Under the pieces are notes generated by a model. That model made no database searches. It saw only the letters and a list, made by a program, of their open reading frames with translations, and was not told the DNA's origin. DNA of 62,335 bases, the filler included, from Dimorphilus gyrociliatus (lineage: Eukaryota; Animalia; Annelida): NCBI GenBank assembly GCA_904063045.1. It is 4 parts of 4 records of this genome, joined end to end, with 100 filler letters (N's around TTAATTAATTAA, not from the genome) between each part and the next. Parts side by side here need not be neighbours in the genome. Positions count along the whole stretch, not along the records: positions 16,054 to 27,162 come from CAJFCJ010000266.1; 3 more parts are not named here. One strand, 5' to 3'. Shown here piece after piece: positions 16,054-27,162 of the stretch (position 1 is the first letter of the stretch; each line of letters begins with the position of its first letter). Made by a program: the position numbers and the translations under genes.

Positions 16054-16086
16054 AATTATGTTAAATATTTTGCATAAACAATTTTT

Positions 16087-17075
16087 GGTAAAATTTGCTT
16101 TCAGGGCCCCCTTAAAAATAAATATTAGAGAAAAATAAATAGACAGTTTCTTTTAAAATAAATTTTTATTAATTTTTATCCGCGCAAAAACTTCCATAAA
16201 CGGATTTTCTTTTTTTAGAAATAAATAATCTTTTATATGTTCACTTAAATTATTTTTTATGTTATTTCCTCTCGTTTTTAAGTAGTGTTTCAACCACTTC
16301 CATTGGTTTTCTATATTTTGAGTGTGAACTTCTGGTATAATTTTTCTTTAAATGCATCTTTATGTTTTATTGTGAAATGTCCATATTCATATAATTTAAT
16401 ATCACAATATCCTTTCCATTCGTCTGTAATGATAACAGAATAATCTTCTACATTTCTATTGATGATTTTTTGAAGTGTAGTTTTATCTCTTCTCATTGCA
16501 ACTTCAAAAAACACTCTTTTGTCGATCTACATAGTCCCCCAACTACCCAAACTTGTTCATTACATCTTCCTATGTTGTACTTACGTTTACTAATTGCACT
16601 TTCATCAATTTCTACTACCTTTCCATCACCTCCTATTTTAGTCAAATGATCTAACCCGATTTTGCTACGAATTAAATCAATCACTGTTTTATAAAGCTTA
16701 TAATTTATTCCATATTCCCTGTTTATTCCACAGAATGGTGTTTTAACAGACCATTCGTAGATTATAAAAATTATTTGTTTTAAAGATGCTTTGATGTTTG
16801 TAAATACTGAACCTTTGCGTATTGAAACCTTCAATTTACCACATTTTTTAGACTTACACAACCAAATTAATCCGTCAACATTGTGATGTGGTACTAAAAA
16901 CATTCCTTTTCTGCATTTTTTACAAAAAGATTTTTTTTTCAAAACTCCCAAATCACATAACCAAGAAAAAAAATTGCGCGGACAGATCATTTTATTATGC
17001 AATTCTATTCTATTTTCAACCATTGGGGGTCAATTTTACAAAACTTTAAGGGGGGCCCTGAAAGCAAATTTTACC
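16087..17075 (-). mobile_element. Merlin (IS1595/ISXO2-like) DNA transposon copy 1; transposase has two frameshifts
   Basis: TIR GGTAAAATTTGCTTTCAGGGCCCCCTTAAA at 16087 and inverted ending 17075. 8-bp TSD CAATTTTT on both sides. Motifs VVEIDESAISKRKYNIGR, IITDEWKGY, HTQNIENQWKWLK. ATG 17023 is preceded by CCCCCA. Confidence 0.9.
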
Positions 17076-17150
17076 CAATTTTTTATTAGATACAGATTTT
17101 GAAATACTTTCTATTTTAAAAAAAAATATTTTTTAATGATTTTTAAAAAA

Positions 17151-17305
17151 TACAAATTTTAAATTATTTTCCAACTTCAAAAAAAAAGAAATTTTTAAAA
17201 AATAAAAATTTGTGATAATTTTCTATTTTAAAAAAATACAGATTTTAAATTATTTTCCAACTTCAAAAAAAAAGAAATTTTTAAAAAATAAAAATTTGTG
17301 ATAAT
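17151..17305. repeat. Local direct duplication with period of about 86 bp
   Basis: ttttaaattattttccaacttcaaaaaaaaagaaatttttaaaaaataaaaatttgtgataat occurs twice (about 17157 and 17243). Confidence 0.8.
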
Positions 17306-17393
17306 GATCTGCTTTACTTAAAGTGTTTTATTTAATAAGTAATACATTTTTAATGATTTTTAAAAAACTTTTAATTTGAATACAATTTTTGTT

Positions 17394-17735
17394 TTAAAAT
17401 AGAAAAATATATCTACGTAACAAAGAGCCATAAAACTGTCTTAAAGAAGTAACTTTGTTTTTAAAAATGAATAAAATAGAGAGAATTTGTATAATAAAAC
17501 CAAAGGCCATATATCCATTAAAAAGCATAAATAAACTCATTAATAGAAATAAAATAGAATAAAAATTCTTAAAAACCAAAATATTATTAAATCGAGGTTT
17601 ACATATCAACATTGTACCAAAAGTCATTATAAAATATCCTGAGATGATCAATGCTCTATCATATAAAAGAATGGAACCTAAAATGAAAAAAAATCCACCA
17701 ATAATAAATAAAATAAATCCTGTCTCTTTGTCCAT
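17394..17735 (-). CDS. GOT1: Got1-family ER-Golgi vesicle transport membrane protein (113 aa, intronless)
   Basis: MDKETGFILFIIGGFFFILGSILLYDRALIISG resembles the Got1 N-terminal G..F..LG..L.FDR.L pattern, with hydrophobic segments throughout. The likely start is 17735 (CCCCCAA-ATG), not the upstream ATG in the ORF track. Confidence 0.7.
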   Translation of the reverse strand: MDKETGFILFIIGGFFFILGSILLYDRALIISGYFIMTFGTMLICKPRFNNILVFKNFYSILFLLMSLFMLFNGYMAFGFIIQILSILFIFKNKVTSLRQFYGSLLRRYIFLF

Positions 17736-17871
17736 TTGGGGGTGTTTATGCAATAAAAGTGTAAAAGAAAGATTTTTTACTGAATTTAAATTTTTTAAAA
17801 AATATAAGAAATAAAAAAAAATAGATCTAATAAATTCAAATTGAATATTCAATTTCAAATAAAAAATACCC
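17736..17871. promoter_or_regulatory. 136-bp bidirectional promoter with CCC signals before both ATGs and an 18-bp palindrome
   Basis: CCC-ATG on + (17869-17874), CCCCCAA-ATG on -, perfect palindrome AAATTGAATATTCAATTT at 17838-17855. Confidence 0.6.
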
Positions 17872-19056
17872 ATGAAATACCATCCAGAATTATTATTAGA
17901 ATTATCTAATTATAAAAAAAATAATGAATTAAATATACCAACACTTTTATTATCAATTTTTATAAATTTTAAGGATGGTTATTCAATAGAAAAATTAAAG
18001 GAAATTTTTTATTCATATAGGAAAAAGAAATTTATTAAAAAAGACATAATAAATTACCTAAATGATGAAATAAAAAATAATTTTATTTTTATAAAGATTT
18101 GCATAAATACAGAAAATGAAGTTCAAATCAGAGAAGTACAAGAGCATGAAGAATCTTCATTTGTATTTCTGAAGAACTGTTTTTCTAGTAAAAATAAGGT
18201 ATATTCAATTTCAATGATAGAAGAAGTTATAAAAAATACTGTTAAACAACAAAATGAATTTTCTGCAAAGATTCAGCTAAAAATAATAAATTTTTTTAAA
18301 GCTGAAATGAAAAAAAAAATTTTAGATGCGAAATTGAAAAAAAAAGAAGAAGAAAAGAAAAAAACTAAAAAAACAATCAAGTCCGGAAAATTTAACAAAT
18401 TAAATTTCACAGAACTGAAAAGAGTAAAACAGGATTTTACAAAATTTGGTATGTTTACTGTTTTAGAGACAGATAATAATAAGATATGTTATGATTATAA
18501 AACACCATATTTAAAAAGATTAAGAAGACCGGAATACGTGAAAGATCCTGTAAAATTGACTTATATCAATTTAGGTAATCCCTTGAGAAAACCTAAATAT
18601 GAAATTCGTGACAAAATTCCGAGAAAGAATAGTTTATTAAAGATAAATAATCAAATAGATTATGAATATGATTCTGACGAAGAGTGGGAATATTGTGAAG
18701 GGGAAGATATCGACTCTATAAGCAGTACTGAGTTAGAGTCAACTACTGAAGATGAAGAACTTAAACAATTTATAGAAAAAGATGAAATTTTTAAAAAAAC
18801 TTACTTAAAACCAACTCTTCATAAATCTAACCTAAAAACAGTTGTATTTAAAGAATATGATGTTGATTCTTGGAGAAAGACACCTTTTTTCAGAAATCAT
18901 ATTATTCAAAAAGAACACGAAATAGAAATTGAAAATATGTTAAAAAATGGAAATAGTCTAGAAAAAATACAAGAAGAAATTAATAGTAAGTATAATTTAA
19001 ACATATATGTTATTTCTAAGAAAATTAAAGAAATATTAAAAAATAATAAAATTTGA
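17872..19056 (+). CDS. RLF2: Chromatin assembly factor 1 large subunit (Rlf2/Cac1/p150), reduced form, 394 aa, intronless
   Basis: K/E-rich coiled stretch followed by RNPL-like GNPLRKP and IDYEYDSDEEWEYCEGEDI (CAF1A DY.YDSD.EW signature plus acidic tract). Confidence 0.8.
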   Translation: MKYHPELLLELSNYKKNNELNIPTLLLSIFINFKDGYSIEKLKEIFYSYRKKKFIKKDIINYLNDEIKNNFIFIKICINTENEVQIREVQEHEESSFVFLKNCFSSKNKVYSISMIEEVIKNTVKQQNEFSAKIQLKIINFFKAEMKKKILDAKLKKKEEEKKKTKKTIKSGKFNKLNFTELKRVKQDFTKFGMFTVLETDNNKICYDYKTPYLKRLRRPEYVKDPVKLTYINLGNPLRKPKYEIRDKIPRKNSLLKINNQIDYEYDSDEEWEYCEGEDIDSISSTELESTTEDEELKQFIEKDEIFKKTYLKPTLHKSNLKTVVFKEYDVDSWRKTPFFRNHIIQKEHEIEIENMLKNGNSLEKIQEEINSKYNLNIYVISKKIKEILKNNKI

Positions 19057-19249
19057 TAAATAGTTTATTTTTATAGGAATGTTTAATACAAAACATATTA
19101 ATTTAAATTATATTTAATGTAAAAATTCAACTTTTATTAATTTTTTTATTTTTTATTTATTCTATATAAAAAAGTATTAACACAAAAGAATTGATTGAAA
19201 TTACTAATTTTATATATAAAATTAGAAAACACAAAGGATAAAATTATTT

Positions 19250-20222
19250 GGTAAAAATTGCTTTCAGGGCCTTCTTAAAATAAAATATTAGAAAGAAATA
19301 AAAATATAAGTAAATTTAAAATGACATTTTAATAATTTTCATCCGAGACAAAATGTCTAAAAATGGATTTTCTTTTTTTAGAAATAAATAATCGTTTATA
19401 TTATTCTTTATATTACTACCACGACTTTTTAGGTAGTGTTTCAACCATTTCCATTGATTTTCAATGTTTTGTGTGTGAATTTCTGGTATATTTTTTTTTA
19501 AAGTTAGTTTTATGTTTAATTGTAAAATGCCCATAATCATGATATTTTATGTCATTATATCCTTTCCATTCATCGGTTATAATAATGGAAAGTTCTTCTA
19601 CATGTTTATTGATAATTCTTTGAAGAGTTAATGAATCTCTTTTTTCTACAACTTCAAAAAAGCATCTTCTTGTGGCTTTACAAAGACCACCAACCAACCA
19701 CAATTGCTCATTACACCTTCCTACATTATATTTTCGCTTAGTAACAGCACTTTCATCAATCTCTATGACTAAACCAGGACCTCCTATTCTAGCTGAGCTG
19801 TCAGATGTAATTTTACTTCTAATTAGCTATATGACTGTTTTATAAAGTTTATAGTTTATGTAATATTGTTCAAATATATCTATAGTTGGCGTTTTTATGG
19901 ACCATTCAAAGATTATAAAAATTATTTTTTTTAGTGATGCTTTTATTTTAGTGAAAACAGAGCCATCACGAATTGAAACCTTACTCTTAACACATTTCTT
20001 TGATTTACACATCCAAATTAAGCCATATATGTTATGATGTGCTACTATATTTCTATCAATTTTACATTTTTTACAGAATGATTTTTTTTTCAAAATATTC
20101 AATTAAGAGAACCACGAAAAAAAAGTGCTCGGACTAATCATTTTTTCTTGCAATTGCAACCTTGTTATTGACATTAGGGGAATATAATTCAGTTTTAAGG
20201 GGCTCTGAAAGCAATTTTTACC
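19250..20222 (-). mobile_element. Merlin transposon copy 2, diverged and degenerate
   Basis: TIR GGTAAAAATTGCTTTCAGGGCC at 19250 and inverted ending 20222. Motifs VIEIDESAVTKRKYNVGR, IITDEWKGY, HTQNIENQW. One in-frame TAG and frameshifts; no clean TSD. CCCCTA precedes the ATG. Confidence 0.85.
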
Positions 20223-21471
20223 TAAAAATTTTTTGGATGTTATTAAAAAAAAGATGTTTTATAATCAGATTAGAGTAATATAAATTACTGAAATATTAGA
20301 CATAGCTAGTCAAAAAACGTTTTTCTAAATTCTTTTTCCCCAAAATTTATATGTCTAATTTTTACCTTGATAACATTTAAACATCTTTATGTATATCTTT
20401 TATTATTTTAGAACAGATTTGTTACTAACTTAGATAGTTAGAACTTCCGTTGTATTCTTGTTTTAAGAAAGTAAGAGTGTTAGTATAAGCTTTATCAATA
20501 CCTATAAATTCTCTATATTGTTAAACATTGTGAATAATAGGACCATATCATTAGGATCATCTCATTTTCCACCAAATGTGTAACTGATTAAGTATAAAAT
20601 TTAGGATGTTTTCCTATAAAAAATGTTCTCTTGGCTTTATAGTACTTATTTAAAAAGTTAAATTCTTACCTACTAGTTTCAATCGTTCTATCTTTTGTAA
20701 AAATCTCAATAAAATTATGTTTCCTAATATGCTACCTTTTAGGCAACCAATGCAGTTGAACCTTACATTTCTTATAAATGCTTATATTTAATAAAATGTT
20801 TGTTTCCTACAATACGAATTGCCTACCATCAGACCAAATTATTTTAATGTGTAATCTTCACATTATATAATATTATAATTATAAGCTATGTTTGGCATTA
20901 AAGCCATGTTTTTATTTATTAATAAAGAGACTTTTTGATTAATATATTTTAGAATAACTCCATCTTATTTATTTCTTGTTTTATCGAGAAAGTCATCAAC
21001 TTAATTGAATGAAATTTTAAAAGCATTTTTGATAATATCATCTATTTTAGTTAATTTTGCATTGCTGATAAATTTATATCTTTCTAAATCAGTTTTACGG
21101 TAGAAATTATTTTCTTGAAAGCTTTTTTTAAAAATTAAGTATATTCAAGCGAGGGACGTTTATCATTAAGAAACTTCTTTTATGGGTGTAACGATTTCTC
21201 ATAGTACCAATATGCGTTCCTTTTATTGTTTATTTAGAGTAATTAGTTATTAGTATATTGAACATTTGATTTTTTATATAAAATGTACAAATAATAAACG
21301 AATTCTACTCTAACGCTCTCGTTTTTTGCTAGTATTTTTACATTTGGGATTATATATATCATTTATACAGCAATAATAAGTTTTTATAAATTTATTTAAA
21401 AAATGAAGAAAATTAACTCCCAAATAAAAAATTCCATTTTCATATATAAATATTATATATTTATATATATG

Positions 21472-21510
21472 ACTAGTAAGCTTAGCACCCGTTTTAAAAA
21501 TAGGTGGTTG
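21472..21510 (-). mobile_element. Possible Helitron 3' terminus
   Basis: Minus strand reads CACCTATTTTTAAAACGGGTG (hairpin), then ctaagctta, then CTAG followed by T, the canonical Helitron 3' geometry. The 5' end was not located. Confidence 0.4.
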
Positions 21511-21582
21511 AATAAATAAACTACCATTATATAAACAATTTTTCTTCTCTATAATAACTCTTTGTAAACAACATTATTAATA

Positions 21583-23035
21583 CAGTCTGGGAAAAAAAAG
21601 AAACAAGTTAAAAAAGTCAAAAATGGCATCTACTTAGGCTATTTAATAAATTTTATTACAATTATTTTATTCAGGTTAATGATATTTATATAAAGGGAAT
21701 TGTTTTTATTTAAAACCTGATTTTATTGACTTTATAACCAAAATAAGTTTCAACAAATCTTAATTTTGAAGAAAAAATTCAACAAAACCAATTTAATAAA
21801 AATATGCTTTCCTTTGTTTCTTATACACTCTACTATTCTTTTATTCATTGATTCACACAGTTTTTTAGACAGATCTGGTGTTATTGTATTCCAAACTTCT
21901 ATTATTTTTGCTTTTAATTCATCATGAGAAGAGAACGATTTAATTCTCAATTCATATTTAATTATTGTCCAAAGGTTTTCGATTGGGTTCAAATAAGGGG
22001 ACTGTGATAGCCACTGTAGTAAATTAATATTATTTGTTTGAAAATACCTTTTAGAAAACCGACTTGTATGCTTAGGGTCATTGTCTTGCTGGAATTTAAT
22101 GACATTACAAGCTAACTGTTCTTTAATTTCAGGCAAATTTGTTGCTAATATTGATACATACTTGACAGCATCCATTATTCCATCAATAAAGTGTAACTTC
22201 CCCACTCCTTTCGAACTAAAACACCCCATACCATTATTTTTTTATATCCATACTTTTTTGTCAGGTTAATAGGTGTTTTCATATCATCACTTTTCCACAC
22301 CTTAAACCTTCCAGCATCATTGAAATATGAAAACGATGTTTCATCACTGAAAATAACATCGTTCCAGTAGTTCTTCCCGAGAAACAACCAGCTTTTGCTA
22401 TTTTTAACCCCTACTCATATGGTGGGGCAGATGCGGGGGTTTATTGGTGTTACTGCTCTGAATCCACTGCCTTTGAGGAAATTACGAATTGTACGCGATG
22501 TAATCGTAATTTTACGTTCTTCATACAGTTCTCTAGCAATTTTATAGCTACTTATTAAACTATCAGTCTTAAATTTTTTTTGATTAGTGATAAATCATGA
22601 TTATTTAACACCTTTTTCCTATCAGTCCCCGTTTTACGTTTTACTGACCGAATTCTTCATATCGTTTAACAATTCTCGAAACAGTAGACAAGCTAATACC
22701 CATTTTTTCGGAAATGTCCTATATGTATATCCTCTTTTTTCAGGGATAAAACCTGACCTTTATCAAACTCGGTGTATTGAGCTTTCATAGGGGCTAAATA
22801 CGTTATATATTTATACTAAAGTGGAGGGAAATTGTATTTTATTTTTTTTTCCCAAAATTAAGATTGATGAAACTTATTTTGGTTATAAAGTCAATAAAAT
22901 CAGGTTTTAAATAACAACAATTTACATTATATAAATATCATTAAGATTGAATAAAGTATTGTAATAAAGTTTATTAAATAAATAAAGTAGATTTGATTTT
23001 TGACTTTTTTTCTTTTCATTTTTTTTCCCAGACTG
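21583..23035 (-). mobile_element. Tc1-like (DD34E) transposon with long (about 190 bp) inverted repeats; transposase is a pseudogene
   Basis: TA-CAGTCTGGG...CCCAGACTG-TA ends. Inverted repeats about 21583-21775 and 22845-23035. ATG 22788. Motifs FSDETSF and FQQDNDPKH...LNPIENLW, with 34 residues between the second D and the E. Stops and frameshifts present. Confidence 0.9.
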
Positions 23036-24055
23036 TATTTGTGCGCTAAAAAATAACATTTTTAAAAAAATTGTATTTATTAAGAATAGGCTCAAATAGT
23101 TTCTGTTTTTTCAATTGTATTTTTATTTAATTAATAAATTTTAGCAGATGATATATTTTTTATCAGTTTAAAATCAATAAATTAATAAAAGCTCAAATTA
23201 GATCAAAATATAGTTTAATCTTGAGCGAAGATTATTTGAAATTATGTTCTTATACAAACTATTCTCTACTTAAAAAAGTATAAAAAATATTTGAATAAAT
23301 TCATTTTTTATAATTTTCCAAAAAAAATAAAACTTTAAAATGTTAATAAGTATATTTTATACATTGCTTATAAGAAAAGACTTTTATAATTTATAATAAA
23401 ATAAATTTAATCAAGTATTTTTTATATTGTTGATTTTTACATCATCATAAAAAATTCTTATTTAATTAATTATAATTTTTTAAACGTAAGATTTGTTATT
23501 ATTTATTTTTTATAAAGACTGTAAATTTAAAATATGGATAAAAATACACTAAAAAGGAACTTTTGATTTTTTTAAAAAATAATTATCCGTAAATATACCA
23601 AAAAGGAAATAGCTTATAATCAATTCTTATATAAGCTATCTAAGAAATCAAAATCAATAGGTTTATAATTTTTATAATTAGAAAGTAAATACTAAAAATA
23701 TATTTTTAATGATGGACATTTATAGACTGATTATACCAATTATGGTTTGTACTTTTGCTTATTACTTAAAATTAGAGAATATTGTTTAATTTCTAATTTA
23801 AAGATTTTGCTGCTTTTGTTAATATACAAAGTAGAGTGTAAATAGTATATTCATAGAATTTTTAAGTTTCATTATTATCATTTACAAATTTGAGAAAAAC
23901 ACATCATAAAAATATACAAAAAACTTTAAATTAAAAATTAAACAATATTCTCTAATTTTAAATAATAAGTAAAAGTATGATTCTATTTTTAGAAAGACAT
24001 GATTTACGTTTCCTTATTTGTCAGATACTATAAAAGCGATCGTGTTTAGATACCC

Positions 24056-25098
24056 ATGTCATCAATTTTATGCTTATTTAACCTTTCAATTATAAGTACA
24101 GCTGCATCTAAAAACTATTGTTATGACCGTATTAGTAAAAAAATAGAAGAGTTGGATGATAAATGTATTGCAAGATTTGCATGTGGTAAAGGTGCTGCTA
24201 TTTGTGGTTGGATTAATAGGGATCTGAAGAAGTATAATGAATATATAAATTCTAATCAGGAAGAAATTTCTCAGGATGATATAATTGATGCACAGAGTAT
24301 TCTTATTTCAAGTATTCGAAAGATGAATGATGTGCTCAAAAATTCATATGGCACTGAAGAGTTAATGAATTGCTATCTTGAAATTGTTTCAGAAATGAAT
24401 AAATTATTTAATCAGGACGACCTAGAAGAATATTATTCAAAAATGAAAATTAATGAAATTCCACCAAATAGAAATCGTCCCCTGTCTATAAAAAAGAACA
24501 AGCAAAGGAAAGTGAAGAGTATAGGGAGAAAAAAAGTGAAAGAATAGTAGAGTCTAAAGGGGCACATGGGTGGATTATAAGATTAGGACCCTGGAAATTC
24601 GAGAGAGACCCAGATCATGTACCTTATTTATACAGAGTTGGGAATCGTATTGCTGAAACAGTCAGATATTATACAGTATATAATAATAGTGAAGAGAGCA
24701 ATAGTAGCGCAGGTGTAGTACCAATAGAAGACGTAGATAGCGATGATTGTATATTTGTTGACACTATTGAAGTAAAAGAAGAACCCCTACACACTGAACC
24801 ATGTCGGCCTATTCAAAATCAACAAAGCAAGGGAAAACTTAGGAGATCACAAGCTGAATTAAAATCAGGAAATGAAAAGAAGCAAAGTCGGGAATTCACA
24901 GAACAATCATCTTCGTCAACTAACGAGTCTAAAAATTTGAGAAAGAAAAAACAAAGAAATAATAACAATCATGAGCAAGAAGAAGAGAATGAAAGCGAAA
25001 GCAGAACAAAAAGAAATCTCTATTCGAGAATACGGAGTGAACTATCACCAGACTTTGACGGGGAAGATGATACGGACCGACAAATAACTCGTGTATAA
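24056..25098 (+). CDS. Orphan intronless gene with N-terminal signal-like sequence; 163 aa as read, about 347 aa if a -1 shift at the A7 run (about 24529-24535) is allowed
   Basis: CCC-ATG start, MSSILCLFNLSIISTAA. The -1 frame after GGGAGAAAAAAAGTG is open for about 187 codons (..SERIVESKGAHGWIIRLGPWKF..KNLRKKKQR..ITRV*) to TAA at 25096-25098. Confidence 0.6.
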
Positions 25099-25806
25099 CT
25101 TTTTACCTTAGTTTTACATTCTAGTTATTGGTTTAATTAGAGTTCTTATTCAATTTTATTTATTATATTTCAATCAGACTTCAGCTAAATTATTACCGTG
25201 GTTTATAGGATTAGTTGCAATTTAAGGTATTTTAATTTTATTGAATAAAACTTATTAATTATTTTTTTTTAAGTATTTGATGCCTTTATTTAAAATTATA
25301 AGTTTACCAATTTAGGTATTAAGCGATGCAAAGTTAAAATACTCTTTTTTAATATTTAGCCCAAATGTTTATAAAGCTAATTGTTCAATATACAATTTAA
25401 CAGACTTACCAAAAAAGTCCCTGTTTAGTTTTATATTAATATAAATTTTCAATTGTATTTCAAATCTCAATTTTTTACATATTTAACAACTTTTTAAAAA
25501 TTATTGTTGATTTACAAAATGCAAAAGAGACTTTTTTAATTTCGTTTTTTAATTGATGAACACTATTGTATAATTATATTTAGACAATTCAAGTTTTTAT
25601 GATAATTTATCATATATATATAATATATTTCGATCAACTAAAAAACTGAACAGAATTTGTGTTTAAAAGAGCTGTAAAATGGTTTTTTATAAACTAGGAA
25701 AACCATCAAAAATAAACACCTCAAACAAATGCGATGATACTATAAACAGTAACTTCGCACTTTTATAATTTCTTGATATTTATTTTTCGTATTTAACAAT
25801 TCTATA

Positions 25807-27162
25807 CATACTGTGTGGTAAGAAAAAAAACACGACACTCTATTTTTTATTAAAAAGCGCGTTTTAGGAGATATAAAAATATATTGTTATATTAATAAAG
25901 GCTGTATTTTCACATAAATTAGTATCCTAATGCCTATTTTTTATTGGTATTGACTAAAATCGTAGTTTGATGGATTTTTTTGAGACTGTTAAGAGAAAAA
26001 CAGGACATTTTTTATTTATCAATTTAGCACCTTTTGCTCTATAAACCAATAAAGAACGTTTTTTGGAAGATAATGGCAGCCTCTGGTACACATTGATGGG
26101 CATATTACTCTATTGACGCACTATTTCTACCTTTAATTCTTCTTTTGATTTGAATACCTTTTTTCATATTTTTGTTTTTATAAGTTCCCAAAGGTTCTTT
26201 ATTAGGCTGAAATCTGGAGATTGAGCAAGCCAATCTTCAACTATAATATTATTTTCTATAAAAACTCTTTAGCCAACTTGTTAGTGTGCTTGGGATTATT
26301 ATCCTAAACAAAAATATAGACAGATAGTCCCATTTTGGTAACTGAATCAAATAAACAAGAGTTTAGCATATTACAATGATAGGTAGCGTCCATTTTTACA
26401 TATATGAGTTTAAATATTCCTTTACCTCCATATGACCCTATACCATAACAAACCCTCCACCAAGTTTTAAGTTGCTTTAAGATTATCAAGATTATATTCT
26501 TTATTGTTACCATCTGAATTTTGCAGTTAAATCTACATTGGTTACTAAACATCATCTTATTTATCGCCTGTTCTGGGCACTCTTGGTCCATCTCTTGTCC
26601 GCCTCAAAACGTGAAAGAATATGACAAGGCACCAATAAAAGCTTTTTTATGAGAGAACATAAAAAATATTGTTATTATTAGGATGTTTACATATTGGAAC
26701 ATGGGATATTCTAACTCCTATATCTTCCCCGGTATTTTTGGACAACTTCCTACACGAAATATCATTCTTTTTTGAACTTGATTGAGTATATCGTCATTTA
26801 TAATAAAGTAACTTTAGATGACCTGCCATTATTACATAAATTCTTATTATATTTACTGTACTTATTGACAATGTAACCCAACTAAAGACTTTGGAATATC
26901 AAGTATTTCTCCTATTTTTCGATATGATAAACCTGATTTGATCAGGCCTATGACCTCTCCCTTTTTGCTCCCTGAGTATTGATGTGACATTTTAGGGCAA
27001 AAAATTTTTTATTTATACTAAAGTGGAGGGAAAACTTAAATTTGATTTTTGTTTAGGGGGGTTTCTTAGCAGTCTCAAAAAAATCCATCAAACTACGATT
27101 TTAGTCAATACCAATAAAAAATAGTCATTAGGATGCTAATTTATGTGAAAATACAGTCTTTA
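25807..27162 (-). mobile_element. Second Tc1-like transposon with long inverted repeats, degenerate; right end cut by the contig end
   Basis: 25896-25995 is the reverse complement of 27062-27162. ATG 26990 (CCCTAAA-ATG). Remnants DNNPKHT and DWLAQSPD. Left boundary is approximate. Confidence 0.8.

Follow-up and report, generated by a model that had tools for sequence, protein, structure and literature searches.

To which organism does an AT-rich, transposon-bearing piece of DNA belong when it is found in the genome assembly of an animal? This question was raised by positions 16054-27162 of the DNA studied here. The window, meaning the whole stretch that was analysed, comprises 62,335 nucleotides (nt) including filler and comes from the annelid Dimorphilus gyrociliatus (assembly GCA_904063045.1); the piece in question comes from record CAJFCJ010000266.1. 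It carries a gene for the large subunit of CAF-1, a divergent neighbour that is probably Got1/Sft2-like, a frame-broken orphan gene, and Merlin and Tc1 transposons. Sequence comparisons suggest that the piece is very probably a nuclear genome fragment of a canonical (long-branch) microsporidian that was co-assembled with the sequenced organism.

The piece is 11,109 bases long, contains zero N and has a G+C content of 25.1%, ranging from 14 to 37% per 500-nt window. The CAF-1 gene and the gene for a 113-amino-acid protein are divergent, with ATGs at 17872(+) and 17735(-) and 136 bp between them. The original prediction had given the same coordinates, extreme AT richness and head-to-head pair, and all of these held on recomputation.

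Identity of the CAF-1 large-subunit gene

The 394-amino-acid protein matched the family PF12253 (CAF1A) with 29 bits, above the cut-off of 25, and its language-model neighbours were CAF-1 subunit A clusters. A search of the PDB with the single sequence gave a best match of only E 7.7. The profile of the protein and its relatives matched chains of human CAF-1 p150 only, with an E-value of 1.4e-5. The matched region was p150 residues 561-629 of 956, which hold the core F..RPP.Y...DYD.DSDEEWE and an acidic stretch. PF12253 was matched in 23 of the 26 family members. The PF12253 match and the profile match to human p150 therefore confirmed, at the level of sequence comparison, the predicted protein as a shortened CAF-1 large subunit (CAF1A/Cac1/p150) of the short microsporidian type. 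Both the name and the shortening had been proposed earlier from the DNA, and the length of 394 amino acids compares with 956 in human p150 and 486-1033 in the Atlas clusters.

Like human p150/CHAF1A and yeast Cac1, the 394-amino-acid protein has the conserved core followed by the acidic stretch, with PF12253 above its cut-off. It differs from them in being without the long N-terminal PCNA/HP1-binding region, in the place of which, relative to human p150, stands a microsporidia-specific N-terminal domain. The Cac1_C winged-helix domain gave no Pfam match on the protein. The open reading frame (ORF) aligned end to end with its microsporidian homologues and no intron was needed, as expected if the gene is intronless.

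Homology evidence for a microsporidian source

An exhaustive HMMER (phmmer) search with the CAF-1 protein was made against 1.84 billion representatives at a threshold of E 1e-3. It returned 28 matches with lengths of 163-566 amino acids and identities of 24-40%, the best at E 3.4e-18. Cluster names were looked up for the best 20 of these matches, and every named cluster among them was microsporidian: Ordospora colligata, Encephalitozoon hellem, Astathelohania (Thelohania) contejeani, Dictyocoela muelleri, Vairimorpha ceranae and Vairimorpha bombi. No ordinary fungal, animal, plant or protist CAF1A was found at E<=1e-3 in this search. Best matches to metazoans or other protists, which would have spoken against the microsporidian origin put forward in the original prediction, did not occur for CAF-1, and that origin is strongly supported. 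The family alignment was collinear from the N- to the C-terminus and began with a shared N-terminal motif, M-x-x-HP-x-x-L. In addition, the ORFs of 394 and 113 amino acids are uninterrupted despite the frequency of stops in this DNA, which we counted in favour of a microsporidian source.

Other searches returned no relatives. The word-index protein search with CAF-1 gave zero matches (none of the 8000 candidates sharing most words scored), the exact look-up found 0 of 6 ORFs in a collection of 15 billion proteins, and the JGI metagenome scan with CAF1A yielded no relative. In a maximum-likelihood tree of the CAF1A family, the query branch measured 2.43 changes per column and had no supported placement. 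Since identity was only 24-40% and the branch was long and unplaced, the source appears to be a lineage without a close sequenced relative. An earlier suggestion of a possibly undescribed microsporidium fits the identity of at most 40% and the long branch, which in themselves show only the lack of a close sequenced relative.

The piece resembles the genomes of AT-rich, transposon-rich microsporidia such as Anncaliia algerae, Vairimorpha/Nosema ceranae, Astathelohania contejeani and Edhazardia aedis. Their G+C content is 24-27%; values of 24-26% were reported for N. ceranae, E. bieneusi, A. algerae and E. aedis (PMC2685015). They also share a CCC-like signal before start codons, short intronless genes, Merlin elements (transposase gene of ~880 bp) and Tc1/mariner elements, and short CAF1A orthologues of 333-406 amino acids. 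The differences are a CAF1A identity of only 24-32%, the long and unplaced branch, and a gene order around CAF1A that is not shared. The source genome is AT-rich, transposon-laden and not fully compacted.

One cluster of CAF1A relatives was located on a metagenome scaffold from Tara Oceans, whose genes are closely spaced. Among the homologues, a protein of 402 amino acids (P0038) was found on compact contigs reaching 200 kb (ENA ERZ27290172, Logan SRR25680263 and the Tara Oceans scaffold). At this locus a thymidine kinase gene adjoins, and 0 of the 7 called genes bore CCC. These contigs seem to represent a microsporidian-like genome of marine origin in which the CCC motif is not used.

The CCC signal before start codons

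A run of at least three C ending 0-4 nt before the ATG was found at all seven gene and transposon starts of the piece: 17023(-), 17735(-), 17872(+), 20174(-), 22788(-), 24056(+) and 26990(-). The run was CCCCC 1 nt before 17023 and 2 nt before 17735, and CCCC 2 nt before 20174 and 1 nt before 22788. It was CCC directly before 17872 and 24056, and 4 nt before 26990. As the background, all 346 ATGs of the two strands were counted, and 12 of them (3.5%) had the same run before them. The run noticed originally before six starts and in the second Merlin copy was thus recovered at 7 of 7 starts.

With the pair of Merlins and the pair of Tc1 elements each counted once, five starts are independent. 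The chance of CCC at all five was ~5e-8. Starts 17023, 17872 and 24056 are the first ATGs of the longest ORFs, so their choice did not depend on the motif. Start 17735 was preferred over the upstream ATG 17873 partly for its CCC, which brings in some circularity. Start 17872 was validated independently, as its N-terminus MKYHPELL aligns with the M-x-x-HP-x-x-L motif of the homologues.

In Microsporidia, a CCC-like motif immediately before the ATG has been documented (PMC2803860, PMC2685015), and microsporidian 5' untranslated regions (UTRs) shorter than 7 nt go with such a motif in the literature. The AAATT-like upstream motif present in the 136-bp spacer also belongs to this motif literature (PMC2803860). 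Judging from these studies, transcription of the genes of the piece would most likely follow the microsporidian pattern, relying on a CCC-like initiator immediately before the ATG and leaving hardly any 5' UTR. As a control, called genes with CCC 0-4 nt from the ATG were counted at reference loci: 3 of 6 in V. ceranae, 2 of 2 in A. contejeani, 1 of 6 in Ordospora and 0 of 7 on the Tara-type contig. CCC also precedes CAF1A itself in A. contejeani and V. ceranae. Because the counts differ among microsporidian loci, the signal is lineage-dependent within Microsporidia, and the behaviour of 16054-27162 is like that of the Nosema/Vairimorpha, Thelohania and Anncaliia type.

Several points weigh against a microsporidian source. 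The taxonomic argument is carried by one gene, CAF-1; names were seen for part of the best 20 of its 28 matches only, and most of the looked-up clusters were nameless. The CAF1A tree held no non-microsporidian outgroup, and in it the query branch was very long and unplaced. The motif is not universal, as the Tara-type contig (0/7) and Ordospora (1/6) show. The adjacency of Got1 and CAF1A was absent in four microsporidian loci; loci without it included those of Ordospora, V. ceranae and A. contejeani, a Logan contig and a Tara Oceans contig. Finally, the 113-amino-acid protein was without relatives in the word-index search and without a Pfam match.

Part of these points would also suit a different AT-rich, compact eukaryote that resembles Microsporidia by convergence, such as a rozellid or short-branch microsporidian relative, an apicomplexan, an amoebozoan or a nucleomorph. 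Low G+C and short intergenic regions also occur outside Microsporidia, the CAF1A identity to any microsporidian is low, and the query branch has no supported placement in the tree. Against this, all named CAF-1 relatives are canonical Microsporidia and share the family-specific N-terminal domain, and CCC stands at every start. Moreover, CAF1A proteins of fungi, animals, plants and protists are plentiful, yet only short proteins reached E 1e-3. We consider such a source extremely unlikely.

Resident Merlin and Tc1 transposons

The Merlin superfamily (IS1595/ISXO2-like DDE transposases) is defined by terminal inverted repeats (TIRs) ending in GG and a target-site duplication (TSD) of 8-9 bp (PMC8101967). 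In Merlin copy 1 the TIRs begin with GG and lie at ~16087-16116 and ~17046-17075, flanked by a perfect 8-bp TSD, CAATTTTT, at 16079-16086 and 17076-17083. Its transposase ORF (16493-17023) covers the N-terminal 176 amino acids and is followed by stops and frameshifts. This part was 61% identical to an intact transposase of 292 amino acids (P0001), which is encoded on a Logan contig of 984 bp; this contig forms a complete element in its own right, and its TIRs are similar. Merlin copy 2 shares 74% identity with copy 1; it likewise has GG-terminal TIRs, and its TSD is degenerate. Its transposase matched DDE_Tnp_IS1595 with 43.6 bits and contains one stop and at least one frameshift. Neither copy encodes an intact (autonomous) transposase. 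The element size of ~980 bp and transposase of ~290 amino acids agree with the Merlins of A. algerae, whose coding sequence is ~880 bp on average (PMC4202319). The DDE_Tnp_IS1595 domain, the TIRs and the TSD uphold the assignment of both copies to Merlin in the original prediction; they differ from other members of the superfamily in being broken and in carrying CCC before the ATG, unlike 37 other Merlins.

This comparison covered 40 metagenomic loci with an N-terminal match and an identifiable ATG. CCC before the ATG was found in 3 of the 40, which were the three closest relatives, L001 (Logan SRR23162985), L002 (JGI 3300026616) and L003 (OLSO01021811.1), and in 0 of the 37 others. The three are intact Merlin elements of ~985-1040 bp with CCC 2-3 nt before the ATG, identities of 48-62% to copy 1 and a G+C content of 24-31%. 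They probably come from other microsporidia in unrelated datasets. CCC is therefore a property of an AT-rich Merlin sublineage and not of Merlins generally, which argues for adaptation to a CCC-using genome.

Two elements were confirmed as members of Tc1/mariner, a group named in the original prediction and characterised by a DDE_3 transposase, a TA target and TACAGT termini with TIRs; the ORFs of both are broken. Element 1 has TACAGT termini and TIRs of ~190 nt. Its transposase is split over three frames and matched DDE_3 with 29.2 bits against a cut-off of 28.6; TATAAATA lies ~27 nt upstream of its ATG at 22788. Element 2 has 99-nt TIRs that are 96% complementary, the right one reaching the end of the piece. 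Its transposase is badly decayed over several frames, with the motifs DNNPKH and SPDFSLIKNLW still readable. The two elements are of different families, with ~70% column identity. They share a near-identical 25-nt block, TTTCCCTCCACTTTAGTATAAATA, at 22803-22827 and 27008-27032, 10-20 nt upstream of the CCC-ATG. Judged from its letters, the block is promoter-like, with a TATA-like box.

As Merlin and Tc1 carry the same CCC signal, we believe that they would be long-term residents of a CCC-using genome rather than transposons of the host animal. All four copies appear to be non-autonomous. Frame breaks were seen at or near A or T homopolymers at 24483-24547 (orphan gene), 19485-19500 (Merlin copy 2) and 22225-22245 (Tc1 element 1). 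Because several breaks lie at such runs, part of the apparent decay of the transposons and the orphan gene may be homopolymer-length assembly error. At least some of the transposon decay is real, as in-frame stop substitutions are present.

Occurrence in other datasets and relation to the sequenced organism

DNA nearly identical to the Got1-CAF1A stretch was found in DNA runs under three organism labels and from six studies, at 5-55% of sampled words. These runs were small, 31-255 million letters. Two marine metatranscriptome runs also contained part of the stretch, at 17% and 9% of sampled words. With library kinds as we guessed them, recurrence in such small runs would favour a small-genome passenger at appreciable load over a single-copy locus of an animal, because the latter would hardly assemble at such depth.

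The same data bear on whether microsporidian DNA had been integrated into a chromosome of the host animal by a recent horizontal insertion. Exchange of transposable elements between microsporidia and metazoa is documented (PMC4202319), and the broken frames of the orphan gene and of all four transposons would suit an insertion. The 394- and 113-amino-acid genes, by contrast, are intact and have kept their CCC signals, and the 11 kb hold no animal-like sequence. The left edge of the piece lies 33 bp outside the TIR of Merlin copy 1 (16054-16086) and the right edge lies within a Tc1 TIR (27064-27162). Since both ends fall at transposon termini, they look like assembly breaks at repeats, and neither flank would be informative on a host. 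The stretch also recurs in runs of very small size under three labels, and in part in marine metatranscriptomes, which is hard to square with a single-copy insertion in one host. With the housekeeping ORFs intact, no host flank and recurrence across datasets, integration seems very unlikely.

The DNA could also be truly microsporidian and not stem from an infection of the sequenced organism, having come from gut content, prey, a hyperparasite of another symbiont, cross-sample or laboratory contamination, or the assembly of a microsporidian project. Three organism labels and the marine metatranscriptomes would fit a common environmental spore or a shared contaminant, and nothing within 16054-27162 ties the DNA to a host. 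As the stretch came up in six separate studies, one laboratory contaminant is a less likely source; direct counter-evidence was not found. We regard this origin as improbable, and a microsporidian co-assembled with the sequenced organism as the preferred explanation.

Microsporidian contigs in the assemblies of other organisms, and microsporidian genomes rich in transposable elements and in AT, are well known (PMC4202319, PMC7313128, PMC6944219). Of interest here are a lineage without a close sequenced relative, its reappearance in several datasets, some of them marine, and a CCC-bearing transposon lineage. A wider picture can be offered only tentatively, and we hold it to be somewhat doubtful: a deep and as yet unsequenced lineage of Microsporidia, its genome large and rich in transposons, may live in several marine hosts, as the three organism labels and the marine metatranscriptomes hint, and its Merlin and Tc1 elements may have acquired the CCC-type start signal of the parasite. 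If this is true, CCC-bearing transposons mark long residence in microsporidian genomes, and CCC on transposons polarises the transfers of transposable elements between microsporidia and animals. CCC stands on the resident transposons and is lacking in distant Merlins, which gives a modest but practical hint as to which way the elements moved. The piece also flags non-target parasite sequence in a public assembly, which matters for decontamination and guards against reporting the Merlin and Tc1 elements or the genes as those of the host animal. If the organism labels are hosts, the source would be a candidate for a new host-parasite association and worth targeting by genome binning.

Neighbouring genes and layout of the piece

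The features of the piece are collected in Table 1.

Table 1. Features identified at positions 16054-27162 of the window
Feature	Position	Strand	Basis or content
Merlin copy 1	16087-17075	-	989 bp; TIRs, TSD, transposase ORF
Tandem repeat, 86-bp unit x1.9, 97% match	17139-17305		Between Merlin copy 1 and 3' end of Got1-like gene
Gene for 113-amino-acid four-helix protein, probably Got1/Sft2-like	17394-17735	-	AlphaFold2 (AF2) model, feature neighbours
Divergent intergenic spacer, 136 bp	17736-17871	.	Both CCC signals and A/T-rich AAATT-like stretches
CAF-1 large-subunit gene, 394 amino acids, intronless (predicted)	17872-19056	+	PF12253, exhaustive homology search, alignment
Merlin copy 2	19250-20222	-	973 bp; DDE_Tnp_IS1595, 43.6 bits
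ORF-free DNA, ~1.3 kb			Between Merlin copy 2 and Tc1 element 1
Tc1 element 1	21581-23037	-	1457 bp; DDE_3, TIRs
Very AT-rich DNA, ~1 kb			Between Tc1 element 1 and orphan gene; contains 59-nt inverted repeat
Inverted repeat, 59-nt arms 93% complementary, 110 nt apart	23750-23977		ORF-free, 14-20% G+C
Orphan gene, frame-broken	24056-25098	+	CCC-ATG start; no Pfam family
Tc1 element 2	25896-27162	-	99-nt TIRs, transposase motifs

The 113-amino-acid protein is probably Got1/Sft2-like, a type involved in Golgi transport. Its top three language-model feature neighbours were Got1 clusters, with a score of 0.83 that ranks as a lead. The AF2 model shows helices at 3-24, 27-44, 52-72 and 76-112, with a predicted local distance difference test score (pLDDT) of 72. 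Neither PF04178 nor any other Pfam family matched the protein, even at E 10, and an Atlas fold search with the model returned generic helical hairpins only. The protein contains the stretch GGFFF...G...YDRAL..SG, which may resemble the Got1 signature. It is thus like Got1/Sft2-like proteins (PF04178) in its size class (~110-140 amino acids), its four predicted transmembrane helices and its nearest feature clusters, but differs in that the Pfam model is unmatched and no sequence relative was found. The earlier designation GOT1 is therefore weaker than the original prediction had put it and no more than probable.

The orphan gene begins with an ORF of 163 amino acids (24056-24547) that has a hydrophobic N-terminus and ends in TAG TAG. 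A second frame, without an ATG, is open at ~24483-25098 and is far too long for chance in such a composition. We read 24056-25098 as one predicted gene of ~345 codons whose frame breaks close to an A-run, through either a genuine frameshift or a homopolymer error of the assembly. The gene has several cysteines, and its C-terminal half is charged and of low complexity. No Pfam family matched either part at E up to 10, and the single-sequence AF2 model of the N-terminal part reached a pLDDT of 45, which is too low for the model to be informative. The N-terminus seems signal-peptide-like, and the product could be a secreted, parasite-specific protein.

No tRNA, rRNA or Rfam family was found within 19169-27162, and no Helitron features were seen in 16054-27162. 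More copies of the Merlin and Tc1 elements probably exist elsewhere in the source genome. The inverted repeat in the AT-rich DNA upstream of the orphan gene has a structure like that of a miniature inverted-repeat transposable element (MITE).

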